Assembly: GCF_020745735.1 (NCBI RefSeq)
Contig: NW_026867498.1
Span: 1,639,822 to 1,703,821 of the forward strand
Length of the DNA stretch: 64,000 nt
Source of the DNA: Hemiscyllium ocellatum
Taxonomy: Eukaryota
Direction: 5' to 3'
Both the position numbers and the translations under genes were made by a program. This document shows, in pieces, positions 17,066-53,603 of the stretch (position 1 is its first letter; each line of letters begins with the position of its first letter). The notes beneath the pieces are model-generated. The model was given only the letters and a program-made list of their open reading frames with translations, had not been told where the DNA came from and did no database searches.

Positions 17066-17212
17066 CTATTTTGCAAATTGAGACACAGACCTGGACCAGC
17101 GTTTCCAGAGTCTGTCCCCTTCTGGATTCACTCTCTTTTCTTTCAGTTGCTGCAAGTCAACAACTGAACCCCAGAATGAAAAAGACATGGAATGGGAGCA
17201 AAATAGTGCCGT

Positions 17213-18019: not shown

Positions 18020-18908
18020 TAGAGTCATAGAGAGATGTACAGCATGGAAACACACCCTTCGGTCCAACCCGCCCATGCCGACCAGATATCCCAACCCAAT
18101 CTAGTCTCACTTGCCAGCACCCAGCCCATATCCCTCCAAACCCTTCGTATTCATATACCCATCCAAATGCCTCTTAAATGTTGCAATTGTACCAGCCTCC
18201 ACCACTTCCTCTGGCAGCTCATTCCATACATGTACCACTCTCTGCATGAAAATGTTGCCCCTTAGGTCTCTTTAATATTTTTCCCCTCTCACCCTAAACC
18301 TATGCCCTCTAGTTCTGGACTCCCCAGGGAAAAGACTTTGCCTATTTATCCTATCCATGACCCTCATAATTTTGTAAACCTCTATAAGGTCACCCCCACC
18401 ACCCCTCCAAGTCTCTGACGCACCAGGGAATCAGCCCCAGCCTGTCCCAATAGCTCAAATCCACCAACACTGGCAACATCCTTGTAAATCTTTTCCGAAC
18501 CCTTTCACGTTTCACAACATCTTTCCGATAGGAAGGAGACCAGAATTGCATGCAATATTCCAACAGTGGCCTAACCAATGTCCTGTACAACCGCAACATG
18601 ACCTCCCAACTACTGTACTCAATACTCTGACCAATAAAGGAAAGCATACCAAACGTCTTCTTCACTATCTTATCTACCTGTGACTCCACTTTCAAGGAGC
18701 TATGAACCTGCACTCCAAGGTCTCTTTGTTCAGCTACACTCCCTAGGACCTCACCATCAAGTGTATAAGTCCTGCTAAGATTTGCTTTCACAAAATGCAG
18801 CACCTCACATTTATCTGAATTAAACTCCATCTGCCACTTCTCAGCCCATTGACCCATCTGGTCCAGATCCTGTTGTAATCTGAGGTAACTCTCTTCGCTG
18901 TCCACTAC
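18020..18908 (-). mobile_element. CR1 LINE 3' fragment (mirror at 45955-46840)
   Basis: LQQDLDQMGQWAEKWQMEFNSDKCEVLHF...LVRPLLEYCMQFWSP. Confidence 0.92.
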
Positions 18909-19530
18909 AGTTGCAAAGGATAGTGGAACACTCTTACACCAATTTGCAGAGTAAGGTTGAGGCTGAAAGGTCACTATGGCAAGATGAGATAACACCGTTA
19001 GTAAAGTTAGCCTCATCTGCTAACTATCATTATTGGGACAATAAATATTTGGGACATGACATTAAATATCTAATTGTTAGTGAGTAGAGTCAGCCTGCTT
19101 GAAACTACTGACAATAAATATCTAATCATGACATTAGGAAAATATTAAGTAGGGTCTAGAATGAAAGACTGTTGTTGCAAAAGCTGACATTAAATCTCTA
19201 ACCGAGACATTGGAATAACATGAAGTAGAATGTACAACTAAAGAGATAATGGGAACTAACATCACAGGCTTATTGTGTAGCTAGACTGAGGTACGTTGAT
19301 AAATATAGTTGGACATGCTGATAAGCTAACACAAACATGATTAAAAAAAAGATATTTTAAAACCACAGACCCTGAGGTTTGTGGGCATTCGAGAATCTGC
19401 TTTTCGAGTGTCACGGTCTTTTTGTTTGCAAATAAACGACCTACTTCTTGAAGAACTCTCTGCGTCTCCTGGTCGTTCTCTACATTTTATCCACGACAAC
19501 AGTCGGAACCAATTTCATGGTACGAGGAGA
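18909..19530 (+). mobile_element. LTR-like element with possible tRNA-Leu PBS (copies at 22410-22858, 41504-41935, 45345-45955)
   Basis: AT-rich. The paralogue at 41504 begins TGTTG. AATAAA at about 19431 and ...caaca at 19501, then ...ttca|TGGTACGAGGAG, which resembles the Leu-TAA PBS TGGTACCAGGAG. Confidence 0.5.
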
Positions 19531-19949
19531 GAAAGACTCGCGGGGGGGGGGGGGGGGGCAAAGGGTGGGGTGAGAGAAAGACTGGGGGGGACAGAGGGTG
19601 GGGTGAATTTTAACTTCGTACACCCCAGTCCAACACCGGCATCTCCAAATCGGGGACGTAGTTCTTTGAAAGTTGCATCATTGCTGGACAGGGTGGTGAA
19701 GGAGGCGTTTGGCACACTTGCCTTCATTGTTCACACCGTTCAGTGTAGGAATTGGGACATCACATTGAGGTTGTACAGGATATTGGTGAGACCACGTGTA
19801 GAGTACTGAGTACACTTCTGGTCGCCCTATCGACGACCACAAGTTGACTGGTGACCTTATTTCGATTTATAAAGTCATGGGGCGTGTAGGAAAGGTAAAT
19901 ATCACAAGGGGGAAGAAAGGGTGGATCTCCCCTTTTTTTACTTCTCTTG

Positions 19950-20220
19950 GCACTTGGACACAAATTCTGTCAGTAACAGCAGCATCACCAGAGAGCATAC
20001 TGCGCGTGCTCCTCGCCGCACGCATCGCGACTTTCTTTTGGTGGACCAATCGGAAGCCCTGGAGGACCGGAAGGATATAGGTCCTCCTGCCAATCAGAGC
20101 CTTCCTGTTGTCTGAATGCAGAAGCTGGAACACGAGCTTCGGAAGGTGCTGCTCCTCTCTCTGAATGAAGATTGAGTTTGTTCCAGACTGCAACCTCCTT
20201 ACTCCGCCAGTACACCGCTC
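19950..20220 (+). promoter_or_regulatory. Diverged copy of the ZNF promoter module, donor degenerate (mirror at 44650-44925)
   Basis: One NRF1-like site, accaatcg and gccaatcag boxes, and ctgaatgcagaag. No adjacent ZNF exon. Confidence 0.55.
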
Positions 20221-23200
20221 TCTTCTCAACTCCTTTTTCATTTTTTTTTCATTCTGGGCTTCAATTTTTGACTTGCACCAACCGAACGGAAAGGGAAATG
20301 AATCCACGAAGTGGACAGAATCTGGAAAAGGTTTTCATAAACAGAGAGTGGTTCATGTATGGAATGAATGTCCAGAGGAAATGGTGGATGCACGTACAGA
20401 TGCAACCTTTAAAAGACGTTTGGATAAGTACATGAATCGGGAAGGTGCGGGGGGATATGGGCCAAACATTGGCAAGTGGCACTGAAACATAGTCAGCATG
20501 GAATAGTAGGGCTGAAGGGTCCGTTTCTGTGCTGTCTAACTAACTGTTCTGTCGTGGTCTTAAAACTTTCTTGCCTTCCACAATAAACGTGGTTATTGTA
20601 CCTGCATCCAACACATAAACCACTGTCAACAAAAAAAAATCACCTCATCTACACAACATAAAAATCCACACTCTGTTGTTCAAAAAAGAGATGATATATT
20701 GCCAAATGAGACCAGGTTAATTTAGGATATTTGGTCAGCATGGACGTGTTTGGTTGGAGGGTCTGTTTCTGTGCTGTTATCCTGGAATTGTCTCTGGTGA
20801 ATGCAGAAGTCTGGTTGGACTTTCAGAGCAGCTTTCCAAGATGGGTTGCCCTTACTGGAAGCAAAAGAAGTCACAATGAAGTATTTCGTTTGTGAGACAG
20901 CAACTGAGTGAGTGAGTACATCTGGGAGTTTGGTGGAAAGTGGGAATTTATTGCACGGTGGGGATGAAGCCCTACCCTACCCTACCCAGGATGAGACCAG
21001 GCCTTGAGTTGAGGAGAGTAGATTTAGGACAGAGATGAGGAGGGACTGCTTTTCCCAGAGAGTAGTCAATCCATGGAATTCCCTGCCCAAGGAAGCAGTA
21101 GAGGCATCTTCATTAAGAATATTCAAAACACAGTTGGATGGGTATTTGCATGGTATGGGAATTAAGGGTAATTGGGACAATGCATGGAGGAGGATCTCAG
21201 ATGACGCATATATCAGCCATGATCATAATGAATGGTGGAGCAGGTTCGATGGGCCAAATGGCCAACTACTACTTCTTTTACTATGAAACTCTAACCCTGC
21301 ATTTCCCATGGCTACCCCACCTAACCTTCACATGCCTGTACATTATGGACAATTTAGCATGACCAATCCAAATCAAGGCCGGTGAGCAATGTAGTGATGT
21401 GGAAAATGAACATCAGAGAACGATAGAAAGGGACAAGGTGAGTAAATGTACCAGCAATCAAAACCGGATTCTGAAGATCACAAAACTTGAAACTAAAAAC
21501 GATGTTTCTGAATGTGTGGTGCATTGTAACAAAATTGACTGCACACATTGAAGAGAATAATTATGATCTGAGACTCCTTACAGAGGCATGGCTTCAGGAT
21601 GACAAGGATTGCATCCTGAATATCAAGGTGATAGTCAAATGGGAAGCGAGGCTTGGCGCTGCTCATCAAAGCACTGATCACAGGGAAGTCTAGTGTTAGC
21701 TTGGATTCAGGTCCTGATTTCTCTGTCCTCTGATGTCCCTGTACCCACAGAGTAAGATATTGGTCTGTTCTGCTCTGCTGGATTTCTGCTGAAGCTTTGA
21801 CCCCCCCACCCCTACACCTTCTGGAACAATAAAACATTCAGTCAATTAAGACCCAAGCCACAATCCCCAGCCTGTCAACCATCCAGACACACAGTGTAGT
21901 CCTAGCTGGGACTTATGATTTATAACAGCTATGATTTATAAAAATATTTACGCCAGCAGAATTAAAGCATCCGTTATCAAATAGACATCGGGATATACAG
22001 CACGCAATAGACTTTACTCTGTCTCATTCACACACATAAACACGTACATCCATGGGAGTGAATTTGTATTTGCAGAATTATATTTGCAGATACATTCTAT
22101 TTTTCTCAAAATATGCACACCCTGCAGGCTGTTTAATCAGTTTGACCTATACTGATAACTTCAGGGATTTCTGAACTTGGACAGCAAAGACCCTTTGTTC
22201 CTCAGCACTCTGTAGGGATCTACTATTTATTACTTCCTTCCTTCTCTTATTAAATTTCGCAGAATGCCTGGAGATTAAATTCCATAGTTCTGCCCCATTT
22301 ACGAGCTGATAGATATCAGAGTGTATCCAGAGACCATCCTTTTCCCTAGGAACAATACAACCTTTCCAGCGTTTATTCCTGGACAGAGGAGGCAGTGTTT
22401 TCTCCAGCTGAGCAGTGTGTTTGTTAGCATGTCCAACTATATTAATCAAAAGTTCCTCACGCTAGCTACACAATAAACCAGTGATTTTAGTTCCCATTAT
22501 CTCTTTATTTGTGCCCTCACAGTTTTTCCTACATTCTACTTAATGTTATTCTAATGTCACAGTTGGAGATTTAATGTCAGCTTTTGCAACAACGGTCTTG
22601 CATTCCAGACCCTACTTAATATTTTCCTAATGTAATGATTAGATATTTATTATCAATAGTCTCAAGCAGGCTGACTCTACTCATTATTAATCAGATATTT
22701 GATGTCATGTCCCAAATATTTATTGTTCCCGTCCTGTCAATCATATTTAGCAGGTGAGGCTAACTTTACTGAATGTTATCTCATCTTGCCATAGTGACCT
22801 TTCAGCCTCAACCTTACTCTGCTAATTGGTGTAAGAGCTTTCCACTATCCTTTGCAACAAATTGGCAGTAGTCTCCATGTTCTAACCCTTCCCATGCTTT
22901 CATGCTCTTTATTTTCCATACTATCTAAAGATAGACTCAGAGTTGTAGAGCACAGAAACAGACCCTGCGGTCCACGCTGACCAGATGTCCCAATTAATCT
23001 AGTGATCCATTTGTCAGCATGTCACCCCTTACCCCTCTGAATCTTTCCTATCCATATCCGCATTCAGATGCATTTTAAATACTGTAATTGCACCAGCCTC
23101 CACCACTTCCTCTGGCAGCTCATTCCATACACATACCACCCTCTGTGCGAAAGGATTGCCCCTTAGGACCCTCAGAAATCTTTCCCCTCTCACCCTAAAC

Positions 23201-23339
23201 CTATGCCCTCCAGTTCTGGTCTCGGTGCCTTGCCCCCACAACAAGGGGAAACGACATACAAAAGTTGAGCAGCCAGACAAAATGCAAAAGGAATAAAATA
23301 TCGAGATAAAGGCAAAACAAATTGTGGCTCTATCTTTTC

Positions 23340-23700
23340 ACCCCGTTGGCATTTGGACACTTAAAATCTGTCAGGAACACCAACATCCCCAGAGAGCATA
23401 CTGCGAATGTTTGCTGGTGTCAGCAACGCAGTGCGCATGCAGTCTAGTATCAGCAAAACACTGAGCATGCTCATCGCTGGACGCAAAAAAGGCGCGAGAC
23501 CTTTTTTTGGTTGGCCAATAGGCAATGTTGGAGGACTGGAAGGAGTCTGGTCCTCCTGCCAATCAGAGTCAGCCCATTGTCTGAATGCGGAAGTTGGACC
23601 ATGAACTTCTCAAGCTGCAGCTCCTGATCCTCTCTCTCTGAATAAAGATAGAGCTTTACCCAGACTGCACATTCCTTCCTCTGTCCCAGATCTGAGAGTC
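23340..23700 (+). promoter_or_regulatory. ZNF promoter module upstream of gene C; donor mutated GT>GA
   Basis: gtgcgcatgc, ggcgcgag, ccaatag, ccaatcag and gcggaagt. Reads ccagatct|GAGAGTC at 23694 where paralogues read |GTGAGTAC. Confidence 0.65.
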
Positions 23701-24671
23701 AGGCACTCTCTTATCTCGCCCCCTTTTCCATTTCTTTTTCATTCTGTAGTTCAGTTGTTGACTTGCAGCAACTGAAAGGAAAGAGTGAATTCGGCAGGGA
23801 CAGACTCCGGAAACGTTGATCCAGGTCTGTATCTCAATTGGCAAAATAGTTAGGCAGGAGGCATCAGATGGTGGAGAAGTCGACGAATCGGTTGTAACCC
23901 TTCTTCAGGGCTGGGGCTGGGTGCAGAAGCTGCAGAGAAAAGGGGGTGGGGATGAAGTGGGAAAAGGTCAAGACAGTTAGAGGGTACGACCTGGTTGGTC
24001 AATCGGAGGAATGAATCTTGTTGGTGGCAGGGAGGAGGGCGGGGATGGGAATGGAGTCAGGGAATGGAGAGGGAGGATTTTTGAAATTGGAAAACTCAAC
24101 GTTGAGTCCTTCGGGCTGCAGGCTGCCCGGAAGATGAGGTGTTGTCCCTCCAATTTGCGGTTAGATTGGTTGTGGCAATGGAGGAGGCCAAAGATGGTCA
24201 TGTCAGAAAGTGGGTGGGAAGGAAATTGGAATGGGTGGTTACTGAGAGGTGTGGTCGCCCTCTGCGGGCACAGCTGCCATGCTCAGCGAATCGTTCCCCA
24301 AGTTTGCACTCGCTCTCCGATATAGAGAAGATCGCAATGGCAAATGCAGTACCACAATATGAAGTTATAGCCTTGGCTGTGGAAAAAAAACGCAGAAAGG
24401 AGGTGCATTGTTTAAATGGAGATGTATTTGAATGTGGAGAAAGTGAGAACTGCAGATGCTGGAGATCAGGCTCAAACATTGTGGTACTGGAAGAGCACGG
24501 GAGGTTAGGCAGCATCCGAGGAGCAGGAGAGTTAACGTTTTGGACATGAGCCCTTTATCAGGAATGATGTGTGGATGGACAAAGAGGCCTCAGCATCCTT
24601 CTACACCAGTCACTGTCATTTGTCAGACAGGTGTAGCAAGCAATCAGCAAGGCAAGTGGTATATTAGCAAG

Positions 24672-25030
24672 AGGAGAAAGTGAGGACTGCAGATGCTGAA
24701 GATCAGAGCTGAAAATGTGTTGCTGGAAAAGCGCAGCAGGTCAGGCAGCATCCAAGGATCAGGAGATTCCACGTTTCGGGCATGAGCCCTTCTTCAGGAA
24801 TGAGGAAAGTGTGCCAAGCAGGCTAAGATAAAAGGAAGGGAGGAGGGACTTGGGGGAGGGGCGTTGGAAATGCGATAGGTGGAAGGATGTTAAGGTGAAG
24901 GTGATAGGCCGGAGTGGGAGAGGGGGTCGGGGTGGAGAGGTCAGGAAGAAGATTGCAGGTTGGGAAGGTGGTGCTGAGTTCGAGGGTTGGGACTCAGACA
25001 AGGTGGGGGGAGGGAAAATGAGAAAACTGG
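24672..25030 (-). mobile_element. Young Neptune-type Penelope 3' fragment with pLTR (mirror at 39330-39695)
   Basis: Near-identical to 30330-30680. Carries CTGAAGA-agggctcatgccc-GAAACGTG. Confidence 0.85.
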
Positions 25031-26793
25031 GGCTCAAGGGCGGAGGAGCGGTAAGTGGTCCAACTAGTCATGGAGATGTACAGCTTAGAAATAGACCCTT
25101 CGGTTCAACCTGTTAATGCCAACCAGATATCCCAACCCAATCTCATCCCAACTGCCAGCATTTGGCCCATATCCCTTCAAACCCTTCCTATTCATACACC
25201 TGTCCAGATGTCTTTTAAATGTTGCAATTGTACTGGCCTCCACCATTTCCTCTGGCAGCTCATTCCATACACGTAATACCCTCTGTGTGAAAAGGTTTCA
25301 CCTCAGATCTCATTTGTATCTATTCCCCTCACTCTAAACATATGCCCTCTAGTTCTGGACTCTTTTCTCCCCGACCCCCTCCCCTGGATAAGGCTTTGTC
25401 TATTTATCCTATCCATGCCCTTCATGATTTTATAGGTTACTCGTTAGCCTCCAACGCTGAGGGGAAACAGCCCTCGCCTCCCTATCGATCACATCCTCCA
25501 ACCCTGGCAACATCCTTGTAAATTTTTTCTGAACACTTTGATGTTTCACAACATCTTACCGATACTAAGGAAACCAGAATTGCACACAATATTCCAAATG
25601 TGGCCTAACCAATGTCCTGTACAGCCACAACATAACTTCCCAAATCCTATACTCAGAGGATTGGGGAACTTTTCAAAACCTACAAAAGACAACTGGGAAA
25701 GAATGGAGGGACAAACCGAACCTTTGAGGGTCAGCTTGGAGGCATCAAGGTCTCAGGACAGGGTGGGGATGATCCCAGCTATGGGCCACATACCAGCAAA
25801 TGGGACTAGATTGATTTAGGATATCTGGTCAGTACAGGCGTGTTGGACAGAAGGGTCTGTTTCTGTGCTGTACATCTCTATGTCTCTGGCTTTCCACTAA
25901 CTTTTGCCACGTCAATAGGTTCACTTTCTCTCTAATGTCGGCGTTAATGCCTTGACGTCTCATTTTGCTCCCACCTTCCTGGGGACATTAACCATCTTGT
26001 GGCTGGTCCTTGCTCAAGAAGCTGCGAGGCAGGTTCACCCTGAATTGGCACACTTTTTTTTTTGCTTCCCAAAATCAGACCTGCTCACTCTCAGCAGGAC
26101 CCCAGTGTTGGGAAAGATATTAACTTTCAGGTGGAGGTATCAAAAGTTCAGAGAGATGTCAGTCTTGACATTTTTGCTTTTTCTGTCCCTGTAAGATCCT
26201 GAATTAGCACCTTCAGGGGAATTAGTTAGAGCGGAGTGAGAACAGAGGGGGAGGGAGAGTGGGATGTGCTTTAAATTTTGTGGGATAACAAAAGAAAAGA
26301 ATGTTCTGCAAAAAGTAGAATTGCTTGTTCAGAATTTCTACCCTGCACTGACAATGATGACTTTTGTAATCTATTCTGACAGAATTTTTGAAGATTTGAA
26401 GAGGGAAGTTTTAAAATCAACAGATGAAGGGCTTAAAACCGAAACATTGACCCTCCTGCTCCTCGGATGCTGCCTGACTCCCCTGTGACTTTCCAGCGCC
26501 ACATTTTTCGACTGACTCTCCAGCATCTCCGGTCCTCACTTTGATGTCAATGTCTAACAGTCACTCAGTCCACTGGGGCCAGCAAAGATTTTCGCCGTGA
26601 TTTCTGAGAGAGGAATCAAAGCTTTTTGGTTCCTGTCTGAGTATGTTTTCAGCATCAGTGGGACTGGACGAGACACCCCACTGTTGCAGTGCACTGTGTG
26701 TGGAGCGTGAAACAGCTTAAAAAAGGCCTGGGAAGGGGATTTCACGGCAGGGAGGGGCTCTACACGTGTTTGTGTGCAGCTGAAGCTTTGGCC

Positions 26794-27930
26794 ATGGAGA
26801 AACCTGAGGAATCCCGCCCTGTGGAGAAACCGTGGAAGTGTGGGGACTGTGGGAAAGGCTTCCGTGTCCCGTCTGCCCTGGAGACTCATCGGCGCAGTCA
26901 CACCGGGGAGAGGCCATTCCCTTGCACCGACTGTGGGAAGGCCTTCAGACATTCCTCCCACCTGCTGGCCCACCAGCAGGACCACACGGGGGAAAGGCCC
27001 TTCAGCTGCCCCGAGTGCGGGAAGGCCTTCGTGTTTTTCTCCGCCCTGTTGGCCCATCAGCGGGTCCACACAGGAGAGAGGCCGTTCAGCTGCCCAGAGT
27101 GCGGGCAGGCTTTTACCAACAACTCCACCCTGCTGAGGCACCAGCGGATCCACACGGGGGAAAGGCCCTTCAGCTGCCCTGAGTGTGGGAAGGCCTTCAG
27201 CTATTCCTCCACCCTGCGGAGCCACCGGCGTGTCCACACCGGGGAGAGGCCCTTCAGCTGCCCAGAGTGTGGGAAGGCTTTTACCAACAACTCCACCCTG
27301 ATGAGGCACCAGCAGATCCACACTGGGGAGAGGCCGTACATCTGCTCTCAGTGCGGGAAGGCCTTCAGCAATTCCTACACTCTGCTGACCCACCAGCGTG
27401 TCCACACGGGGGAGAGGCCGTTCACCTGCTCTCAGTGTGGGAAGGGCTTCACCTGCTCCTCCCACCTGCGGAGCCACCAGCGGGTCCACACGGGGGAGAG
27501 GCCCTTCAGCTGCCCCGAGTGCGAGAAGGCTTTTACCAACAACTCCACCCTGCTGACCCACCAGCGTGTCCACACCGGGGAGAGGCCGTTCACCTGCTCA
27601 AAGTGCGGGAAGGGCTTCACCTGCTCCTCCATCCTGCGGAGCCACCAGCGGGTCCACACCGGGGAGAGGCCCTTCAGCTGCCCCGAGTGCGGGAAGGCCT
27701 TCAGCACATCCTCCTCCCTTCTGAAGCACCAGCGGGTCCACACCGAGGAGAGGCCTTACATCTGCTCTCAGTGTGGGAAGGGCTTCAGGTCTTCCTCCAA
27801 CCTGCTGACCCACCGGAGGGTCCACACCGGGGAGAGACCTTACACGTGCTTTCACTGTGGGAAGGGTTTCACCCGCCGCTCCCACCTGCGGAGCCACCAG
27901 CGAGTTCACGTGCCATCGCAGAGGGATTGA
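26794..27930 (+). CDS. C2H2 zinc-finger protein C, 378 aa, 13 fingers, no KRAB/SCAN/BTB domain visible
   Basis: Kozak-like gccATGG at 26794. Uninterrupted ORF of 13 CxxC-x12-HxxxH units with TGERP linkers, ending HVPSQRD*. Confidence 0.9.
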
Positions 27931-28635
27931 AGGAGTGACGGGCGAGTCCCATTATCGATTGGACTATCAACCCGGTTCCGGGGACTCCCAGGTTTGAATC
28001 CCGCCACGACAGATGGCAGACTTGGTATTCGGTCAGAAATGTGGAATTCGGAATCTAACGAGACCATTTCAGGGAGGAGGTGGTGCAAGGGAGAAAGCCC
28101 CCATCTGATTCCCTCTCTCCCTTGTTAGGGAAGGGAACCCCCATTGTGGGAAAGGATACACTCAAGTCGTTCCAGCTGCATCCTTTACCCGGTCTGGCCT
28201 ACACGTGACTCCAGACCCACAGCAGTCTGGTTGACTCTACACTGCCCCTTCCTGGTAAAGGAGCGGGGAGAAACTTACTTGGAGACAGGGTATGGGTTGA
28301 AATTGCTGAGTGAGGCAATACTTCCTCCGGGTTACGGCTGTGCCAAGGATCCAATTACAAAGGGACAACTTGGTGCTGGCCAATAGTAAAGACAGTGAGG
28401 GGGGTGGGGAGGGGGCCAGGGGAGGTGTGGTGTGTGCACTTTCACCTTGAGCTGTTCGAAAAGCAACTACTTTTTCTCTGCCTTTTTGCTGGGGGGATCT
28501 GAAGCTGTAACAAAGTTGGGTTGCAATAAAGGTTACCTGAAATTACCACCGGGCTCAGACTCTCATTGAAAGCTTTGAGCTCCAAGAGGTTTTTGTTTTA
28601 AAGCTGCTCATTTATTTCAGCCTCATGCACTAAGT

Positions 28636-30325
28636 TTAGAACATAGAACAATCCAGCGCAGAACAGGCCCTTCGACCTTCGATGTTGTGCCGACCTGTGA
28701 ACTATTCTCAGCTCATTCCCCGACACTATCCTAAAATCATCCATGCACTTATCTAAGGATTGTTTAAATCTCCCTAATGTGGCTGAGTTGACTACCTTAG
28801 CAGGTAGGGCTTTCCATGCCCTTACCACTCTCTGTGTCAAGAACTTGCCTCTGACATCTGTCTTAAATCTATCACTCCTCAATTTGTAGTTATGCCCTCT
28901 CGTACATGCTAACGTCATCATCCTAGGAAAATGTCTTTCTCGGTCTAAACTTTCTCATCCTCTGATCATCTTTTATGTCCCTATCAAATCCCCCCTGAGC
29001 CGCCGCCTTTCCAATGAGAAAAGACCCAAGTCTCTCAGCCTTTCCTCATAAGACCTTCCCTCCAGTCCAGGCAACATCCGGTAAATCTCCTCTGCACCTT
29101 TTCCAATGTTTCCACATCCTTTCTATGATGGGGCGACCAGAACTGTACACAATATTCCAAGTATGGCTGCACCAGTGTTTTGTATAGTTGCAGCATGATA
29201 TTGCGGTTCTGGAACTCAATCCCTCTCCCAATGAAAGCTAACACACCGTGTGCCTTCTAAACAGCACTGTACACCTGGGTTGCAACTTTCATGGATTTAT
29301 GCACATTATTAAGATCCCTCCGCACATCCACAATACCAAGAATCTTTCCATTGACCAACTACTCTGCCATCCTGTTATTCTTCCCGAAGTGCATCATCTC
29401 ACATTTAGCTGCATTGAACTCCATTTGCCACCTCTAAGCCCAATTCTGCAGTTTATCCAAATCCCCCTGCAATCTGTAACATTCTTCCAAACTGTCCAGT
29501 TCTCCACCGACTTTAGTGTCGTCTGCAAATTTACTAATCCATCCACCTGTGCCTTCATCTAAGTCAGTTATAAAAATGACAAACAGCAGTGGTCCCAAAA
29601 CATCCTTGTGGAACACCACTAGTAACTTGACTCCAGACTGAGTATTTTCTATCAACCACCACTCGCTGCCTTCTTCCAGTTTCTCATCCAAACTGACGAA
29701 GGGCTCTGGCCCGAAACGTCAAATTTCCTGTTCCTTGGATGCTGCCTAACCTGCTGTGCTTTAACCAGCAACACATTTTCAGCTCTAATCCAAACTGCTA
29801 AACCACCCTCAATTCCATGCCTCTGTACTTTCTCCATCAGCCTACCATGTGAACCTTATCAAAGGCTTTACTGAACCAAGTATACCACGTCAACTGCTCT
29901 ACCCTCATCTGCATGCTTGGTCACCTTCTCAAAAAACTCAATGAGGTTTGTGAGACACGATCTGCCCTTGACAAAACCATGTTGACTATCTGAAATTAAA
30001 TTGTTGCTTACTAGATGATTATAAGTTTTATCTCTTATAATCCTTTCCAAAATCTTTCGTACAATAGAAGGAAGGCTCACTGATCTATAATTACCTGGGT
30101 CATCTCTGCTGCCCTTCTTGAACAAGGGCACAACATTTGCAATCCTCCAGTCCTCAGATACTAAACCCGTAGACAATGATGACTCAAATATCAAAGCTAA
30201 AGGCTCTGCTATCTCCTCCCTAGCTTCCCAGAGAATCCTCGGATAAATCCCATCCAGCCCAGGGACTTTTCTACTTTCACTCCTTCTTGAATTGATAACA
30301 CCTGTGTGTGACTAACCTCGATCCT
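28636..30325 (-). mobile_element. CR1 LINE ORF2 (RT) fragment downstream of gene C
   Basis: DWRIANVVPLFKKGSRDDPGNYRSVSL...QHGFVKGRSCLTNLIEFFE and VLGPLLFVIFITDL...SKFADDTK. Tail agaacatagaaca. Confidence 0.95.
29693..29790 (+). mobile_element. Short Penelope pLTR insertion in the CR1, with hammerhead core and about 10-bp TSD
   Basis: CTGACGA-agggctctggccc-GAAACGTC. atccaaactg is repeated on both sides. Confidence 0.8.
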
Positions 30326-33300
30326 TTCGAGGAGAAAGTGAGGACTGCAGATGCTGGAGATCAGAGCTGAAAATGTGTTGCTGGAAAAGCACAGCAGGTC
30401 AGGCAGCATCCAAAGAGCAGGAGAATCGATGTTTCAGGCATAAGCCCTTCTTCAGGAATGAGGAAAGTGTGTCCAACAGGCTAAGATAAAAGTGGGGGAA
30501 GAGGGACTTGGGGGAGGGGCGTTGGAGATGCGATTGGTGGAAGGAGGTCAAGGTGAGGGTGGTAAGCCGGAGTGAGGTGGGGGTGGAGAGGTCAGGAAGA
30601 AGATTGCAGTTTAGGAAGGCGTTGCTGAGTTCGAGGGATTTGACTGAGACAAGGTGGGGGGAGGGGAAATGAGGAAACTGGAGAAATCTGAGTTCATCCC
30701 TTGTGGTTGGAGGGTTCCTAGGTGGAAGATGAGGCGCTCTTCCTCCAACCATCGTGTTGCTATGGTTTGGCGATGGAGGAGTCCAAGAGCCTGCATGTCC
30801 TTGGTGGAGTGGGAGGGGGAGTTGAAGTGTTGAGCCACGGGGTGGTTGGGTTGGTTGATCCGGGTGTCCCAGAGGTGTTCTCTGAAACGGTCTGCAAGTA
30901 GGCGGCCTGTCTCCCCAATATAGAGGAGGCCACATCGGGTGCAGCGGATGCAATAAATGATGTGTGTGGAGGTGCAGGTGAATTTGCAGTGGATATGGAA
31001 GGATCCCTTGGGGCCTTGGAGGGAAGGAAGGGGGGAGGTGTGGGCGCAAGTTTTGCATTTCTTGCGGTTGCAGGGGAAGGTACCACGAGTGGAGGTTGGG
31101 TTGGTGGGGGGTGTGGATGTGACGAGCGAGTCACGGAAGGAGTGGTCTTTCGGAACGCTGATAGGGGAGGGGAGGGAAATATATCCCTGGTGGTGGGGTC
31201 CGTTTGGAGGTGGCGGAAATGACGGCGGATGATACGCTGTATATGGAGGTTGGTGGGGTGGTAGGTGAGAACCAGTGGGGTTCTGTCCTGGTGGCGGATG
31301 AAGGGGTGGAGCTCAAGGGCGGAGGAACGGGAAGTGGAGGAGATGCGGTGGAGGACATTGTCGATCACGTTGAAGAAGGAGGCTATCTGGGTTGTATGGT
31401 ATTGAAACTGGTCCTCCTGGGAGCAGATGCGGCGGAGACGAAGGAATTGGGAATATGGGATGGCGTTTTTACAGGGGGCAGGGTTGGAGGAGGTGTAGTC
31501 TAGGTAGCTGTGAGCGTCAGTCGGTTTATAGTAAATGTCCGTGTTGATTCGGTTATCCGAGATAGAAATGGAAAGATCTAGGAAGGGAAGGGAGGGATCT
31601 GAGACGGTCCAGTTGAATTTGAGGTCAGGGTGGAAGGTGTTGGTAAAGTGGATGAACTGTTCAACCTCCTCGTGCGAGCACGAGGCAGCGCTAATACAGT
31701 CATCGACGTAGCAGAGGAAAAGGTGGGGCTGGTGCCAGTGTAGTTGCGGAAGATGGACAATTCCACATATCCTACGAAGAGACAGGCATAGCTGGGGCCC
31801 ATGCGGTTGCCCATGGCTACTCCTTTGGTTTGGAGGAGTGGGAGGATTGGAAAGAGAAGTTGTTCAGGGTGAGGACCAGTTCAGTCAGTCGAAGGAGGGT
31901 GTCAGTGGAAGGGTACTGGCTGGGTCGATGGGAAAGGAAGAAGCGGAGGGCTTTGAGTCCTTCATGATGGGGGATGGAGGTGGAAAGGGACTGGATGTCC
32001 ATGGTGAAGATAAGGCGTTGGGGACCGGGGAAGCGAAAGCCATGGAGGAGGTGGAGGGCGTGGGTGGTGTCCCGAACTTATGTGGGGAGTTCTTGGACTA
32101 AGGGGGACAGGACCGTGTCGAGGTATGCAGAGATGGGTTCGGTGGGGCAGGAGCAGGTTGAGACAATGGGCCGGCCGGGGCAGTCAGGTTTGTGGATTTT
32201 GGGCAGGAGGTAGAAACGGGCAGTGCAGGGTTGTGGGACTGAGGTTGGAGGTGGTGGATGGGAGATCCCCTGAGCTGATGAGGTTATGCATGGTCTGGGA
32301 GATGATGGTTTGGTGGTGGTCAAGGGGGCAGAAGGAGGAGGTGTCCATGAGCTGGCGTTTAGCCTCACCGGTGTAAAGGTCGGTGTGCCAAACTACTACC
32401 GCACCTCCCTTGTCTGCCAGTTTGATGGTGAGGTTGGGATTGGAGCGGAGGGAGTGGAGGGCTGCATATTCAGTGGGTGAGAGGTTGGAGTGGGTGAGAG
32501 GGGTGGAGAGGTTGAGGCGGTTAATGTCGCGGCGGCAGTTGGCTATAAAGTGATCGAGGGCAGGTAAGAGGCCAGCACGGGGCGTCCAGGTGGATGGGCT
32601 ATGTTGGAGGCGGGAGATGGGGTCGTCAGAGGATGGGCAAGAATCTTGGTTGAAGAAGTAGGCAGGGAGGCGAAGGCGGCGGAAGAATTGTTCGATGTCT
32701 CGCCGCGTGTTGAACTCGTTAATCCGAGAGCGTAGGGGAATGAAGGTGAGGCCTCTGCTGAGGACTGATCTTTTATCCTCAGAGAGGGGGAGGGCTGGAG
32801 GGATGGTGAAAACACGGCAGGGCTGGGCACTAGGACCTGGTGTGGGGCTGGAGCTAGGAGTGAGGGTGGGTTTAGGGGCGGGGACGGGGATGAAGATCGG
32901 TGTGGGGGCGGAGTTGGGCATGGTGACAGAGATCGGCGTGGGGGCGGAGACACATGCGGCGTTGTGGTCGTGCGGGTTAGTGATGTCACTGGGGGCGGAA
33001 GTGGCTGCGGCGATGGCAACCCAAGGGGCTAAAGTGGCTGTGGCGACGAAAGAAACCATGTTATTCCCGATAGCCGTGGAGGTCACAAACTGGCCATAAC
33101 CACGTCCAGGCAGCGGGCCGTGGAGGGGGTCGTTAGGGCCGACTGCCTTACCCCTCTTCCGCGGTTACGTTAGAGCCCGGGTGTCCTTGGAGAAGGAGCA
33201 CGCGGTGTCCACCAACACCTTGGAGTTGTTCAGGGGGAGGTGGGTGCCGCAGGGAGTGGAGTGCATCATTTCCCCCTCCAACTCTAATTTGATTGAGTCC

Positions 33301-33539
33301 CTGCCCTCCCCTTCACTGATTGATCACACAGCATTGCCCTTTGATGTGAAGGGCACTGCTTGTCACTGGCCACCCGGGTGTTTTCCTATCTTCCTGGTGG
33401 TGGGAATTGAATAAAGATTGGTGCACTTTGTTTCTCTCACTGTGTCTCATACCTGCTCACACACAACATGGTGCTGGGGAAAAAATAAGCACGACCGCAG
33501 TGAGGCGGTAGGGTGGGGGTTAATGTAAAAAAAGGGAAT

Positions 33540-34080
33540 AAACACTAGAACAAAGGACCCAATAGCCAGCACGAGCCAAACTAACGTAGTTTACAAAATA
33601 CCATGCAAGGACTGCACAAAACACTATTTAGGACAAACAGGAAGACAGCTAACAATCCGCATCCATGAACATCAGCTAGCCACAAAACGACACGACCAGC
33701 TATCTCTAGTAGCCACACACTCAGACAACCATGAACATGAATTTGACTGGGAAAACACTACCATCATAGGACAAGCCAGACAGAGAACAGCCAGGGAATT
33801 CCTAGAGGCATGGCATTCATCCACAAACTCCATCAACAGACACATTGACCTGGACCCCATATACAAACTACTACAGCTGAAACTGACACCCGGAAGCGGC
33901 AAGAACAAACCAATATAAATACTGGAAGAAACATCAAAGCAGCGCTTCACAGGAGGCTCCAATAGCACTGATGATGTTCCCCAGCCAGGGAACGAAACGT
34001 TTGCAGCAAAAACTTCCAGCTCGGCGAACAGAACCACAACAACGGACACCCGAGCTACAAATCTTCACCCAGACTTTAAA
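33540..34080 (+). mobile_element. Nested Poseidon-type Penelope 3' fragment (GIY-YIG plus pLTR)
   Basis: NVVYKIPCKDCTKHYLGQTGRQLTIRIHEH...AREFLEAWHS...NRHIDLDPIY. Confidence 0.88.
33965..34004 (+). ncRNA. Minimal type I hammerhead ribozyme motif
   Basis: gca-CTGATGA-t-gttccc-cagcca-gggaac-GAAAC-GTT-tgc: intact core, 6-bp stem II, palindromic ACGT stem III and 3-bp stem I. Confidence 0.75.
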
Positions 34081-34212
34081 GGGAAAAAACAAACAGGAGA
34101 TTTATGTTAGAGCCCGGGTGTCCTTGGAGAAGGAGCAAAAATAAATACTGTCACTATGACAGGACAGGCCCCACATTCCTTCCCCTCCGTCCCCCCCCAC
34201 AACCTGCCTCAC

Positions 34213-34467
34213 CTTTCACCTCCCGGGCCCAGTACCTTCCAGGTGGCCCCAGAGTTGACACAGGGGCCGCCCCACGACCAGTAGAACTCCACCACCCAGG
34301 CGCCCGACCAGTTCCCAAGCAGGTCCTTAACCCCATCCGCCTCCAGAATGTTCACCGGCTCCTGGCTGCTGTACAGCCGGCCGGTGTGGCCGTGACACAG
34401 CAGCTGCGCCAGGAAGGCGGCGGCGGCGGCCAGTGCCGGGTGTCTGCCCCGGGCCGCACGGCGCCAT
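34213..34467 (-). pseudogene. QSOX-family (QSOX1/QSOX2) exon 1, complete copy B, inactivated
   Basis: ATG at 34467. MAPCGPGQTP(+1)ALAAAAAFLAQLLCHGHTGRLYSSQEPVNILEADGVKDLLGNWSGAWVVEFYWSWGGPCVNSGATWKVL(+1)AREVK, then phase-1 donor GTGAGG at 34212. CGHC has become GGPC. Confidence 0.88.
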
Positions 34468-34745
34468 TTTCCTAACGGCCGCCCTCCCGCCGCTTCCTCG
34501 CTCGAGCGACTTCTCCTCCCAACCGCCTTCGCCCCCGCGTGACGTCTGCACGGGGGAATGGGCGGGGCCGGGGGAGCCTCACCGTCACCAAGCAACAGCC
34601 ACCTCGCGCTACAACTGCTCATTCACAAAAACAAACTCTCCTGTCTCGCTCTGCAGCTGCAGGGGGGGACACTGCCACGTTTCGAGGAGCCCTGTCTACA
34701 TTGGGAAAGCTCACCGCTCCATTTAAACAGATATTCCCACATCTC
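34460..34745 (-). promoter_or_regulatory. CpG-island promoter carried with the QSOX exon
   Basis: YY1-like CGCCATTTT over the ATG, CRE-like GTGACGTC, GC boxes GGGCGGGG. Confidence 0.65.
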
Positions 34746-36068
34746 ACTTGCCTGCATTTGGCCCATTTCCCTCTAAACCTTTCTATTCATGTACCCATCC
34801 AAATGCTGTTTCAATGTTGTCACTGCACCTGCATCGACCACATCCTCAGCAAGTTCATTCCACATGCAACTCACTCTCTTTCAAAATGTTGCCCCTCCGC
34901 TTCCTTTTAAATCTCTCTCCTTACATTAAAAAAAAAGCTCCCCGAGTTTTGAGTTCCCCTACGCTAAGCAAGAGCCATTTTCTATTCACCTTCCCTCCAC
35001 TCCTCATGATTTTATCAATCTCAATGAGGTCAACCCCCAACCTCCTGTGCTCCAGTGAATAAAGTCCCAGCCTCTCCTTATAACTCAAACCCTCCAGTCC
35101 TTACAACATCCTGGTAAATCTTTATTAAACCCTCTCTAATAGTATTCTTCCTAATACAGGGTCACCAGAACTGTACTCAGTACTCTGAAAGTGGCCTCAC
35201 CAACATCCTGTACAACCTCAACATGATGTCCCAACCCCTCTCCTCAATGGTGTGAACAATGAAGGCAATGTTGCAAAACGCCACCTTAACCACCCTGTCT
35301 ACCAGTGATGCAACCTCCAAAGAACTATGTACCTGAACACCCCAGCCCCATGTCTGTCTGTTCCATAACACGACTCATGGCCCGATCATTATCTGTACAA
35401 GTCCTTGTTTTGGCAAAAATGCAACCCCTTGCTTTTAATAAGCCTCTCTCTCACACACATATCCATCTCTCACACAGACAACACACACCCCTTAACACTC
35501 TCACACTCACAGCCTCATACTCCATCACACACTCACTTTCCCAAGCATGCACACTCACACACAAACTCACATGCACACGCTCTCATTCTCTCATGCACAC
35601 ACACACACGACTCTTTGGGTTGAAATTGTATTGGCAGAATTATATTTGCAGATACATTTAATTTTGTTCAAAAAGCACACAATCTGCAGGCAGTCAATGC
35701 ATGTAATATTTTACAAATTCCAACTTTGGAAACAGAACCAGTCTGACTCAAGATTGGAATACAGACAGACTCAAATCTCATATCTTTAATGCATTGTCTG
35801 AGGGGAGATATCTTTGTTTTATAAAACCTTAAGTTATCTCAAGAACATTGTTACATATTAATGAACCAAAGCCTGCACCCATTCTAAGAGATGAAGACTA
35901 TCTAAGTTTGTTCAATATATCAGTTGCATGACACTGATCTTTTGATATAAGTTCTGTGTCTTATGACGCTGTTCCATGAGGCTTATATATTGATGAGCTG
36001 AAAATGTGTTGCTGGAAAAGCGCAGCAGGTTAGGCAGCATCCAAAGAGCAAGAGAGTCAACATTTCGA

Positions 36069-36470
36069 GCTGAGAGACTTGGGTCTTTTCTCATTGGAAA
36101 GAAGGTGGTTAAGGGGGGATTTGATAGAGACATAAAAGATGATCAGAGGATTTGATAGGGTAGACAGAGAAAGACTTTTTCCTAGGATGATAACGTTAGC
36201 TTGTACGAGGGGGCATAACTACAAATTGAGGGGTGATAGCTTTAAGACAGATGTCAGAGGCAAGTTCTTTACACAGAGAGTGGTAAGGGCGTGGAATGCC
36301 CTACCTGCTAAGGTAGTCAACTCAGCCACATTAGGGAGATTTAAACAATCCTTAGATAAGTGCATGGATGATTTTGGGATAGTGTAGGGGAGCGAGCTGA
36401 GAATAGTTCGTAGGTCAGCACAACATCGAGGGCCGAAGGGCCTGTTCTGCATTGGATTGTTCTATGTTCT
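36069..36470 (+). mobile_element. CR1 3' end downstream of gene D (same insertion as 6660-7455 and 28636-30325)
   Basis: GFDRVDRERLFP...TQRVVRAWNALP. Shares the 3' junction tgttctaaac.tagtgcagg with the other two copies. Confidence 0.9.
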
Positions 36471-37166
36471 AAACGTAGTGCAGGAGGCTGAAAGAAATGA
36501 GCAGCTTTAAAACAAAAACCTCTTGGAGCTCAAAGCTTTCAATGAGAGTCTGAGCCCGGTGGTAAGTTCAGGTAACCTTTATTGCAACCCAACTTTGTTA
36601 CAGCTTCAGATCCCCCCAGCAAAGAGGCAGAGAAAAAGTAGTTGCTTTTTGAACAGCTCAAGGTGAAAGCGCACACACCACACCTCACCTGCCCACCCCC
36701 CCCACCTCACTGTCTTTACTATTGGTCAGCACCAAGCTGTCCCTTTGTATTTGGATCCTTGGTTCAGCTGTAACCCGGAGGAAGTATTGCCTCACTCAGC
36801 AATTTCAACCCATACCCTGTCTCCAAATAAGTTTCTCCCCGCTCCTTTACCAGGAAGGGGCAGTGTAGATTCAACCATACTGCTGTGGGTCTGGAGTCAC
36901 GTGTAGGCCAGACCGGGTAAAGGATGCAGCTGGAACGACTTGAGTGTATCCTTTCCCACAGTGGCGGTTCCCTTCCCTAACAAGGGAGAGATGGGGGCTT
37001 TCTCCCTCTACCACCCCCTCCCTGAAATGGTCTCATCGTTAGATTCCGAATTCTACATTTCTGACCAAATACCAATTCTGCCATCTGTCGTGGCGGGATT
37101 CAAACCCGGGAGTCCCCGGAACCGGGTTGATATTCCAATCGATAATGGGACTCGGCCGTCTCTCCT

Positions 37167-37580
37167 TCAATCCCCCTGCGATGGCACGTGAACTCGTTGG
37201 TGGCTCCGCAGGTGGGAGGAGCGGGTGAAGCCCTTCCCGCACTGAGAGCAGATGTACGGCCTCTCCCCGGTGTGGATCCGCTGGTGTCTCCGCAGGTGGT
37301 AGGGGCGGGTGAAACCCTTCCCGCACTGAGAGCAGGTGAACGGCCTCTCCCCCGTGTGGACCCGCTGGTGGGTCAGCAGGGCGGAGGAATTGCTGAAGGC
37401 CTTCCCGCACTTGGGGCAGCTGAAGGGCCTCTCCCCCGTGTGGATCTGCTGGTGCCTCATCAGGGAGGAGGTCTGGGTAAAGGCCTTCCCACACAGGGCA
37501 GATGGGAAACGGAAGCCTTTCCCACAGTCCCCACACTTCCACGGTTTCTCCACAGGGCGGGATTCCTCAGGTTTCTCCAT
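37167..37580 (-). CDS. C2H2 zinc-finger gene D, 137 aa, in-frame internal deletion, 3 intact fingers (possible pseudogene)
   Basis: ATG at 37580. Fusion FRFPSAL|[10 protein letters not shown], then three fingers ending HVPSQGD*. Confidence 0.7.
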
Positions 37581-40500
37581 GGCCAAAGCTTCAGCTGCAC
37601 ACAAACACGTGTAGAGCCCCTCCCTGCCGTGAAATCCCCTTCCCAGGCCGTATAACTGTTTCAGGCTCCACACACAGTGCGCTCCAACAGTGGGGTCTCT
37701 CGTCCAGTCCCACTGATGCTGAAAACATACTCAGACAGGAACCAAAAAGCTCTGATTCCTCTCTCAGAAATCACGGCGAAAATCTTTGCTGGCCCCAGTG
37801 GACTGAGTGACTGTTAGACATTGACATCAAAGTGAGGACCGGAGATGCTGGAGAGTCAGTCAAAAAATGTGGCACTGGAAAATCACAGGGGAGTCAGGCA
37901 GCATCCGAGGAGCAGGAGGGTCAATGTTTCGGTTATAAGCCCTTCATCTGTTGATTTTAAAACTTCCCTCTTCAAATCTTCAAAAATTCTGTCAGAATAG
38001 ATTACAAAAGTCATCACTGTCAGTGCAGGGTAGAAATTCTGAACAAGCAATTCTACTTTTTGCAGAACATTCTTTTCTTTTGTTATTCCAGAAAATTTAA
38101 AGCACATCCCACTCTCTCCCCCCTCTGTTCTCACTCCGCTCTAACTAATTCCCCTGAAGGTGCTGATTCAGGATCTTACAGGGACAGAAAAAGCAAAAAT
38201 GTCAAGACTGACATCTCTCTGAACTTTTGATACCTCCACCTGAAAGTTAATATCTTTCCCAACACTGGGATCCTGCTGAGAGTGAGCAGGTCTGATTTTG
38301 GGAAGCAAAAAAAGTGTGTCAATTCAGGGTGAACCTGCCTCGCAGCTTCTTGAGCAAGGACCAGACACAAGATGGTTAACGTCCCCAGGAAGGTGGGAGC
38401 AAAATGAGACGTCAAGGCATTAACGCCGACATTAGAGAGAAAGTGAACCTACTGACGTGGCAAAAGTTAGTGGAAAGCCAGAGTCATAGAGATGTACAGC
38501 ACAGAAACAGACCCTTCTGTCCAACACGCCTGTACTGACCAGATATCCTAAATCAATCTAGTCCCATTTTCTGGTATGTGGCCCATAGCTGGGGTCATCC
38601 CCACCCCCTGTCCTGAGACCTTGAGCCTCCAAGCTGACCCTCAAAGGTTCGGTTTGTCCTCGATTCTTTCCCAGTTGTCTTTTGTAGGTTTTGAAAACTT
38701 TCCCAATCCTCTGAGTATAGGATTTGGGAAGTTATGTTGTGGCTGGACAGGACATTGGTTAGGCCACATTTGGAATATTGTGTGCAATTCTGGTTTCCTT
38801 AGTATCGGTAAGATGTTGTGAAACATCATAGTGTTCAGAAAAAATTTACAAGGATGTTGCCAGGGTTGGAGGATGTGATCGATAGGGAGGCGAGGGCTGT
38901 TTCTCCTCAGCGTTGGAGGCTAAGGAGTAATCTATAAAATCATGAAGGGCATGGATAGCATAAATAGACAAAGCCTTATCCAGGGGAGGGGGTCGGCGGG
39001 GAAAAGAGTCCAGAACTAGAGGGCATATGTTTAGGGTGAGGGGAAAAAATACAAATGAGATCTGAGGTGAAACTTTTTCACACAGAGGGTATTACGTGTA
39101 TGGAATGAGCTGCCAGAGGAAATGGTGGAGGCCAGTACAATTGCAACATTTAAAAGACATCTGGACAGGTGTATGAATAGGAAGGGTTTGAAGGGGTATG
39201 GGCCAAATGCTGGCAGTTGGGATTAGATTGGGTTGGGATATCTGGTTGGCATGAACGGGTTGAACCGAAGGGTCTTTTTCTAAGCTGTACATCTCCATGA
39301 CTAGTTGGACCATTTCCCGCTCCTCCGCCCTTGAGCCCCAGTTTTCTCATTTTCCCTCCCCCCACCTTGTCTCAGTCCCAACCCTCGAACTCAGCACCAC
39401 CAGCCCAACCTGCAATCTTCTTCCTGACCTCTCCACCCCGACCCCCGCTCCCACTCCGGCCTATCAGCTTCACCTTAACATCCTTCCACCTATCGTATTT
39501 CCAACGCCCCTCCCCCAAGTCCCTCCTCCCTTCCTTTTATCTTAGCCTGCTTGGCACACTTTCCTCATTCCTGAAGAAGGGCTCATGCCCGAAACGTGGA
39601 TTCTCCTGATCCTTGGATGCTGCCTGACCTGCTGCGCTTTTCCAGCAACACATTTTCAGCTCTGATCTCCAGCATCTGCAGTCCTCACTTTCTCCTCTTG
39701 CTAATATACCACTTGCCTTGCTGATTGCTTGCTACACCTGTCTGACAAATGACAGTGACTGGTGTAGAAGGACGCTGAGGCCTCTTTGTCCATCCACACA
39801 TCATTCCTGATAAAGGGCTCATGTCCAAAACGTCAACTCTCCTGCTCCTCGGATGCTGCCTAACCTACCGTGCTCTTCCAGTACCACACTGTTTGACCCT
39901 GATCTCCAGCATCTGCAGTTCTCACTTTCTCCAATTCAAATACATCTCCATTTAAACAATGCACCTCCTTTCTGCGTTTTTTTTTCCACAGCCAAGGCTA
40001 TAACTTCATATTGTGGTACTGCATTTGCCATTGCGGTCTTCTCTATATCGGAGAGTGAGTGCAAACTTGGGGAACGATTCGCCGAGCATCGCAGCTGTGC
40101 CCGCAGAGGGCGACCAGACCTCTCAGTAACCACCCATTCCAATTTCCTTCCCACCCTCTTTCTGACATGACCATCTTTGGCCTCCTCCATTGCCACAACA
40201 AATCTAACCGCAAATTGGAGGGACAACACCTCATCTTCCGAGCAGCCTGCAGCCCGAAGGACTCAACGTTGAGTTTTCCAATATCAAAAATCCTCCCTCT
40301 CCATTCCCTGACTCCATTCCCATCCCCGCCCTCCTCCCTGCCACCAACAAGATTCATTCCTCCGATTGACCAACCAGGTCGTACCCTCTAACTGTCTTGA
40401 CCTTTTCCCACTTCACCCCCACCCCCTTTTCTCTGCAGCTTCTGCACCCAGCCCCAGCCCTGAAGAAGGGTTACAACCGATTCGTCGACTTCTCCGCCAT

Positions 40501-53568: not shown

Positions 53569-53603
53569 CACCTGATGAAGGAGCGGCGCTCCGAAAGCTA
53601 GTG
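53569..53603 (+). ncRNA. Minimal hammerhead motif in a third Penelope-derived family
   Basis: cac-CTGATGA-a-ggagc-ggc-gctcc-GAAA-GCTA-gtg: intact core, palindromic AGCT, stem I cac/gtg. Confidence 0.7.

Follow-up and report, generated by a model that had tools for sequence, protein, structure and literature searches.

We analyzed a 64-kb stretch of the genome of the hemiscylliid shark Hemiscyllium ocellatum (RefSeq assembly GCF_020745735.1, contig NW_026867498.1, positions 1,639,822 to 1,703,821 of the forward strand; hereafter the window), which contains no N and which, from its list of open reading frames (ORFs) and Pfam, is a cluster of C2H2 zinc-finger (ZNF) genes. Self-comparison and a three-way alignment of the window revealed three partial copies of a module derived from a gene of the QSOX (sulfhydryl oxidase) family, namely a CpG-island promoter-like region, a remnant of QSOX exon 1 and the beginning of intron 1. 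All three lie on the minus strand; the module is complete in copy B, from the island to ~64 bp of intron, and copies A and C are deletion derivatives. The features of the three copies are as follows, with transposable element abbreviated as TE and the thioredoxin domains of QSOX as Trx1 and Trx2:

34468-34745, minus strand: copy B, CpG-island promoter-like region upstream of the QSOX ATG (sequence read, CpG computed).
34569-34560, minus strand: GC box GGCCCCGCCC (motif read from the sequence).
34547-34540, minus strand: CRE-like motif AGACGTCA (motif read from the sequence).
34470-34462, minus strand: YY1-like motif AAAATGGCG, which contains the ATG (motif read from the sequence).
34213-34467, minus strand: copy B, QSOX exon 1 remnant with ATG, signal-peptide-like stretch and start of Trx1 (translation, phmmer, tblastn).
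34149-34212, minus strand: copy B, intact phase-1 donor AAAG/GTGAGG (GT at 34212-34211) and ~64 bp of intron 1 (sequence, alignment to copy A).
4889-5053, minus strand: copy A, 3' half of the exon (from ..NSSGAWVVEFYWSWGGPC), donor at 4952-4951 and intron stub (alignment, tblastn).
58840-59134, minus strand: copy C, promoter region, ATG at 58868-58866 and the first 9 codons (alignment).
59135-59719, minus strand: upstream of copy C, a 318-bp unique stretch followed by a 268-bp TE-like block at 59452-59719 (alignment).

The promoter-like region of copy B (34468-34745) has a GC content of 0.61 and an observed-to-expected (o/e) CpG ratio of 0.90 vs. 0.42 for the whole window; with the exon included (34212-34745) these values are 0.65 and 0.77, respectively. 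CpG o/e is 0.22 in the TE adjoining copy B, and neighbouring sequence has decayed to 0.2-0.5. The start codon (34467-34465) lies within AAAATGGCG. Past the ATG and a 5' +1 shift (a run of G plus C, 34450-34446), the frame yields the hydrophobic stretch ALAAAAAFLAQLLCHGHTG and then the QSOX-like peptide RLYSSQEPVNILEADGVKDLLGNWSGAWVVEFYWSWGGPCVNSGATWKVL. QSOX1 and QSOX2 start with a signal peptide, and their Trx1 motif is WCGHC. Copy B resembles their first exon in its signal-peptide-like N-terminus, in the motifs (R)LYS..DP..L, AWVVEFY.SW and TWK.LA..VK, and in the phase-1 boundary after ..VK. Unlike QSOX1 and QSOX2, the fragment reads WGGPC in place of the catalytic WCGHC (GGPC codons at 34271-34260 in copy B) and carries a +1 shift before the donor, which is the second one in copy B. 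This 3' shift consists of an extra G at 34230-34228 and is followed by AREVK up to the exon end at 34213. The QSOX-like frame hits a stop right at the donor, and no ORF runs from the ATG through the exon into the phase-1 donor. Copy B is unable to encode an oxidase because Trx1 is truncated to ~55 residues, the first catalytic cysteine is lost and the frame is shifted by the additional G before the donor.

The identity of the exon was addressed by profile and alignment searches. When the 74-residue piece of copy B was compared by phmmer with all PDB sequences, the top seven matches were QSOX1 entries (best E=4.6e-10), and the best match outside the family was TXNDC5, a protein of thioredoxin fold (E=4.7e-4). 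Among 1.8 billion representative proteins, two near-identical short proteins led the phmmer matches (E=8e-35 and 8e-22), both RefSeq models named 'sulfhydryl oxidase-like'; these were followed by thioredoxin-repeat proteins, QSOX exon-1 fragments, and full-length QSOX2 and QSOX1. Conversely, when seven full-length QSOX proteins were searched against the 64-kb window by tblastn, the only matches, at 34.2 kb and 5.0 kb, involved residues ~20-87, which correspond to exon 1. This search detected no exon in the window that encodes Trx2, the helix-rich region (HRR) or the FAD-binding Erv/ALR domain. The fragment differs from QSOX1 and QSOX2 in being multicopy and in having no Trx2, HRR or Erv/ALR exons nearby. 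A very long intron leading out of the window is conceivable for one copy, yet it is no explanation for three. The exon boundary agrees with that on Logan contig L001, the best match outside sharks, where a genuine QSOX exon 1 ends in ..GDVK/GT in phase 1 at the position at which copy B has ..REVK/GT; this contig carries a distant QSOX exon 1 with DNA similarity over 41 bp and was used for the exon boundary only. Pfam assigned the 74-amino-acid peptide to Thioredoxin with E=0.18, i.e., under threshold, because the fragment is too short (~55 residues) and has lost its CxxC motif.

As to the parent gene, small exon-1 profiles of QSOX1 and QSOX2 scored 53-70 bits, with QSOX2 ahead by 3-8 bits for six family members, where the QSOX2 profile set was teleost-only and the last five residues of the copy B peptide came from the shifted frame. 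Identities by blastp were 51-52% to QSOX2 vs. 45-49% to QSOX1. Elasmobranch QSOX1 or QSOX2 was absent from the matches of a lamprey-seeded search, which were QSOX1 of reptiles, ray-finned fish and mammals, and from cluster look-ups. RefSeq names the copies both '1-like' and '2-like', and the lead of 3-8 bits favours QSOX2 only slightly as the possible parent.

From these comparisons of sequence we consider it secure that the exon is QSOX exon 1, that it is non-processed and that it is dead as coding sequence. The original prediction, made from the letters of the window, had already proposed a QSOX first exon, and its quoted strings are all present at their places. It had named TBLASTN against QSOX1 and QSOX2 as a check; full-length QSOX proteins indeed match only exon 1 at copies B and A, and the best PDB match belongs to QSOX1 and not to a protein outside the family. 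Its description of a genomic exon and not a retrocopy agrees with the donor, the intron sequence and the exon boundary found on L001. The loss of coding function is borne out by GGPC and the frameshifts, and the promoter motifs and donor that it regarded as surviving are there in the form of the CpG-island promoter-like region and GTGAGG. The placement inside a ZNF cluster holds as well, with C2H2 ORFs on both strands around copy B, and the second donor that it listed at 4952 belongs to copy A. As for its two +1 shifts, both occur in copy B; only the 3' shift, together with GGPC, is common to the whole family, and the 5' shift varies. Copy C (58840-59134) was absent from its list. Two simpler classifications of the locus were rejected. 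A real QSOX gene does not fit several copies, a dead active site and the lack of further QSOX exons; a retrocopy does not fit the intron stub and donor or the lack of poly-A.

The three copies differ in their end points, which are explained by deletions and one insertion. Copy A has lost the promoter and the 5' half of the exon and is identical to copy B at 162 of 165 positions; the next ZNF leader on its strand is found at ~602, 4.35 kb farther downstream. Copy C, with a CpG o/e of 0.87, has lost the remaining exon and the donor, so that it joins directly to the downstream flank that in copy A follows the intron stub; an 11-bp gap aside, it matches copy B at 294 of 295 positions. The TE-like block upstream of copy C (59452-59719) is also found upstream of copy A (5054-5321; 268 bp, 94.8% identical), and copies A and C further have ~1 kb of downstream flank in common. 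Homology between copies B and A stops at ~34149, ~10 bp short of a retroelement repeat at 34137, and on its upstream side copy B adjoins a tail resembling a long interspersed element (LINE), through a deletion. The flanks that the three copies have in common outside the QSOX part, together with their differing end points, indicate that copies A, B and C derive from one larger duplicated unit via segmental duplication, with later deletions and one insertion. The donor, the intron sequence, the lack of poly-A and the flanks common to copies likewise mark the fragment, as far as its sequence goes, as a non-processed duplicate.

Within this unit, the QSOX piece is better conserved than its surroundings. 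Copies A and B differ at 3/165 sites of the QSOX piece (98.2% identity) vs. 254/3409 in the flanks of the same unit (Fisher P=0.003), and copies B and C differ at 1/295 sites (99.7% identity) vs. 88/1254 in the A-C flanks (P ~2e-7). The flanks of the units are 92.5-93% identical, and identity among other duplicates in the window reaches only ~97% even in the youngest.

The module is not limited to the window. When the 137-codon ORF of copy B, in which 51 codons are translated upstream sequence, was used in a protein search, the matches were RefSeq models of three hemiscylliid sharks only. Models from sharks outside the hemiscylliids were absent from the matches, which suggests a family confined to this group. 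Short models named 'sulfhydryl oxidase 1-like' or '2-like' occur at a minimum of a dozen loci (at least) in H. ocellatum, Chiloscyllium plagiosum and C. punctatum. The closest is P0127 of H. ocellatum ('sulfhydryl oxidase 1-like'), which is encoded on a 110-kb scaffold and is 99% identical to copy B, with one residue different; the listed RefSeq proteins do not include the copy found in the window. Cluster listings contain >20 models, with those of H. ocellatum (P0127 and five more) on at least four scaffolds, >10 isoforms from at least two loci in C. plagiosum (isoforms X1-X7) and at least five models on one chromosome in C. punctatum. Over the whole 137-codon ORF, the translated promoter stretch included, copy B is 82-99% identical to such models (XP_060678593, XP_043538291, XP_072411752), and it has GGPC and the 3' frameshift in common with them. 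The RefSeq records present these models as protein-coding, whereas we judge the ORFs to be incidental.

WSWGGPC and KVLGPGGER were present in every family model examined (20+). Because these features are common to all copies, the loss of the cysteine and the 3' frameshift predate the amplification, having arisen once and before the split between Hemiscyllium and Chiloscyllium. The run of G after MAPCGPG varies in length among paralogs (34450-34446 in copy B, 58851-58847 in copy C); P0129, P0130, P0131 and P0133 are in frame from the ATG, and several paralogs including copies B and C are out of frame. This variable 5' frame argues against selection on the peptide. Between genera, the 153 nt of translated upstream sequence show 2-3 changes per 51 codons vs. 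9-10 per 85 codons in the exon, a trend that is not significant. The >20 RefSeq 'sulfhydryl oxidase 1-like/2-like' proteins (P0127-P0147, P0001, P0002) are made up of the dead exon plus either promoter sequence or arbitrary downstream exons. On the basis of their sequences, these shark models are almost certainly not oxidases and are mis-annotated as protein-coding.

Several of the downstream exons used by these models have counterparts in the window, where the ZNF genes and their surroundings are arranged as follows:

26689-27930, plus strand: single-exon C2H2 ZNF ORF of 413 amino acids with 12 fingers and no KRAB (ORF list, Pfam).
50696-52084, plus strand: single-exon C2H2 ZNF ORF (ORF list).
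8166-9309, minus strand: C2H2 ZNF ORF, frameshifted and split in two overlapping ORFs (ORF list).
37167-37673, minus strand: short C2H2 ZNF ORF with ~four fingers left (168 amino acids) after an internal deletion (ORF list).
Below ~300, minus strand: 5' end of another C2H2 ZNF ORF (ORF list).
9548-9623, minus strand: start of a ZNF leader exon ~330 nt upstream of the ZNF ATG, with polypyrimidine tract and CAG acceptor at 9627-9624 (alignment of five leaders, tblastn).
37993-37913 (minus strand), 26378-26458 (plus strand), 50301-50384 (plus strand) and 602-515 (minus strand): paralogous ZNF leaders (alignment of five leaders, tblastn).
54085-54190, minus strand: exon located 4.65 kb downstream of copy C and preceded by a strong acceptor (AG at 54192-54191), matching the tail of P0129 at 94% amino acid identity (tblastn).
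30400-34137, minus strand: degraded retroelement in the intron stub of copy B (self-comparison).

All RefSeq models of the family run past GPGGE across the exon-1 donor into differing second exons, with up to seven isoforms per locus. The tails of P0132 (C. punctatum, VFEDLKTEVSKSTD) and P0137 (C. plagiosum, VIENLKSKVSKTTDEG) have only five matches in the window by tblastn, and each of these is a ZNF leader ~330 nt upstream of a ZNF ATG; four of the five leaders are preceded by a polypyrimidine tract and AG. To judge from their protein tails, these two isoforms are modelled as spliced into the ZNF leader type of sequence. Tails of other models are antisense-LINE exons. In C. punctatum, on one strand, a 386-amino-acid single-exon gene is followed by a 3.3-kb spacer, a QSOX-like gene spanning 19 kb and a second QSOX-like gene, with a period of ~27 kb, cf. 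offsets of 24-29 kb in the window.

The window itself is a large imperfect palindrome (10617-29039 vs. 64000-36069) with arms that are 90-97% identical. Its spacer of ~7 kb (29040-36068) contains copy B, and its right arm carries an extra 9.8 kb (50257-60031), about one ZNF repeat unit in size, that contains copy C. In addition, 4884-10062 is a direct repeat of 34142-38431, and each of these units has a minus-strand ZNF that is followed, ~2.5-3 kb downstream, by the QSOX piece. The retroelement at 30400-34137 has a 36-bp direct repeat (34102-34137 and 33165-33200) and severs copy B from its original downstream sequence. A GIY-YIG-like motif, CGLLYIGETGRLLADRFREH, read by eye near 30930-30870, suggests a Penelope-like element; Pfam returned no match for two of the retroelement's ORFs or for the ORF of a CpG-rich minisatellite.

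Additional observations concern the ZNF genes. The units at 8166-9309 and 37167-37673 on the minus strand look damaged. A segment resembling a short interspersed element (SINE; gaagggcttatgcccgaaac...ctgctgtgcttttccag) was noted at 9560-9480, at 30480-30350 and in the paralogous ZNF leaders; because the leader exons contain this segment and it recurs elsewhere in the window, part of the ZNF 5' leader is TE-derived. The strongest CpG islands of the window (13851-14650 and 60001-60750, o/e 1.0-1.1) surround a 29-bp minisatellite (13991-14183) and have no similarity to the QSOX module; the ZNF leader at 9623 follows ~4.3-5 kb downstream of them, so that their relative position equals that of copy A to the ZNF at ~602, and they may be an alternative ZNF promoter. 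A search with the ZNF protein returned generic vertebrate ZNFs, with no shark entries among the matches.

The best explanation for the module, in which we have moderate confidence, is that part of a QSOX gene was duplicated without processing and with its 3' portion missing, leaving a CpG-island promoter, exon 1 and some tens of bases at the start of intron 1, and that this piece was amplified along with the ZNF cluster and has probably come to serve anew as promoter and first exon. The fragment would have joined the repeat unit of the C2H2 ZNF cluster in the hemiscylliid lineage that includes Hemiscyllium and Chiloscyllium, and would then have multiplied through direct and inverted segmental duplication. 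Transcription would start in the surviving CpG island, and the exon-1 donor, a strong one that also survives, would be spliced to any downstream acceptor on the same strand, be it a ZNF leader, a TE-derived exon or another exon. This would yield chimeric transcripts with a ZNF leader, or non-coding RNAs, whose QSOX-derived upstream ORF carries no meaning. In the window, the retroelement and the palindrome centre separate copy B from any same-strand ZNF. A role of the module as promoter and first exon for chimeric ZNF-leader or non-coding transcripts is probable, judging from the sequences and gene models. Recruitment of this kind had been part of the original prediction, and it gains indirect support from the RefSeq models of sister species that join the donor to a ZNF leader or other exons, and from a module that is better conserved than its flanks; it is not matched by a complete unit in the window.

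A number of observations weigh against reuse as a promoter and first exon. No copy in the window forms a complete unit of promoter, donor and same-strand ZNF: downstream of copy B, the next ZNF (26689-27930) is on the plus strand; copy A has a donor and a same-strand ZNF leader at ~602 but no promoter; and copy C has a promoter but no donor, with the next ZNF again on the plus strand. RefSeq models may stem in part from ab initio prediction or from homology to proteins. The high identity between copies could stem from gene conversion of a GC-rich segment or from recent duplication. Translation of a ZNF ORF located downstream would be impeded by 85-170 codons of upstream ORF derived from QSOX, and we infer the island's origin in the parental QSOX promoter from its position and CpG content alone.

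One alternative is that the module is an inert relic, i.e., a piece of QSOX exon 1 carried passively in ZNF duplications and without any transcriptional role, in which case gene conversion or recent duplication would account for the identity of the copies and the RefSeq genes would be artefacts of protein homology. The state of the window is in line with such a relic, as all three copies are damaged or stranded (A and C by deletions, B by the retroelement and palindrome centre downstream), the reading frame varies between copies, and no Logan or transcript-derived member was among the homologues found. Evidence against a relic comes from island-level CpG where the neighbours have decayed to an o/e of 0.2-0.5, from a single mismatch in 295 bp when even the youngest other duplicates of the window differ by ~3%, and from up to seven spliced RefSeq isoforms per locus, in three species and from one common donor. 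We regard an inert relic as a serious but rather doubtful alternative. A stronger version of the reuse as promoter and first exon appears equally tentative to us: the island and first exon might be a selectively maintained promoter and 5'-leader module, domesticated by the hemiscylliid C2H2-ZNF family before the Hemiscyllium-Chiloscyllium split, such that each expansion copies a broadly active promoter with the ZNF unit and the upstream ORF serves as a translational brake.

Two further explanations concern how the fragment spread and what it might encode. Capture by a mobile element (a Helitron or Pack-type capture, or retroelement transduction) that took up and spread the QSOX promoter and exon 1 could account for copies on several scaffolds and chromosomes, for a C. 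plagiosum copy within the span of a cadherin gene, and for the TE sequence that adjoins every copy in the window. Nevertheless, the lack of common termini among copies A, B and C and of flanking terminal inverted or direct repeats around the module argues against transposon capture; moreover, copies A and C share flanks on both sides, with end points attributable to deletions and one insertion, and the intron stub is present without poly-A. Capture is therefore very unlikely in our estimation. We give no more credence to a short secreted peptide, composed of the signal peptide and ~60-100 residues with a new function. The N-terminus is signal-peptide-like, and the frame set by the QSOX ATG continues across the exon in P0129, P0130, P0131 and P0133, but the frame after the ATG depends on the length of the G-run in copies B and C and several paralogs, and the C-termini change with each downstream exon. 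The Trx fold is cut after ~55 residues and lacks CxxC, in line with the sub-threshold Pfam result for Thioredoxin, and conservation upstream of the ATG tends to equal or exceed that of the 'coding' part, although not significantly so.

A literature search for QSOX, shark and zinc finger yielded nothing relevant. Reuse of the QSOX fragment as promoter and first exon would have parallels in primates, where 3'-truncated segmental duplicates that retain the ancestral promoter splice into neighbouring family genes, as in NOTCH2NL-NBPF fusions and others (PMC6169893), and where a duplicated promoter drives the NPEPPSP1-TBC1D3 fusion transcript, which has two separate ORFs (PMC12871316). By analogy, the shark module would belong to this known kind of promoter-bearing partial duplicates. 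As in NPEPPSP1-TBC1D3 and NOTCH2NL-NBPF, the fragment consists of a promoter and first exon beside an amplifying gene family, and its donor would, according to the gene models, be spliced into exons of a neighbour. In contrast to these cases, the shark fragment keeps one exon only and was itself amplified with the family unit, at no fewer than (at least) a dozen loci in three species instead of a single junction. Furthermore, we infer its transcription from annotation, and its host is an elasmobranch ZNF cluster without KRAB.

For practical purposes, the >20 shark RefSeq sulfhydryl oxidase-like models are better regarded as leaders derived from a pseudogene or as non-coding RNAs. Provided that the module is active, it would be a clear non-mammalian case in which a partial duplicate equips an expanding ZNF cluster with a first exon and its CpG-island promoter, and the promoter piggy-backing of primate segmental duplications would extend to the slowly evolving genomes of sharks.

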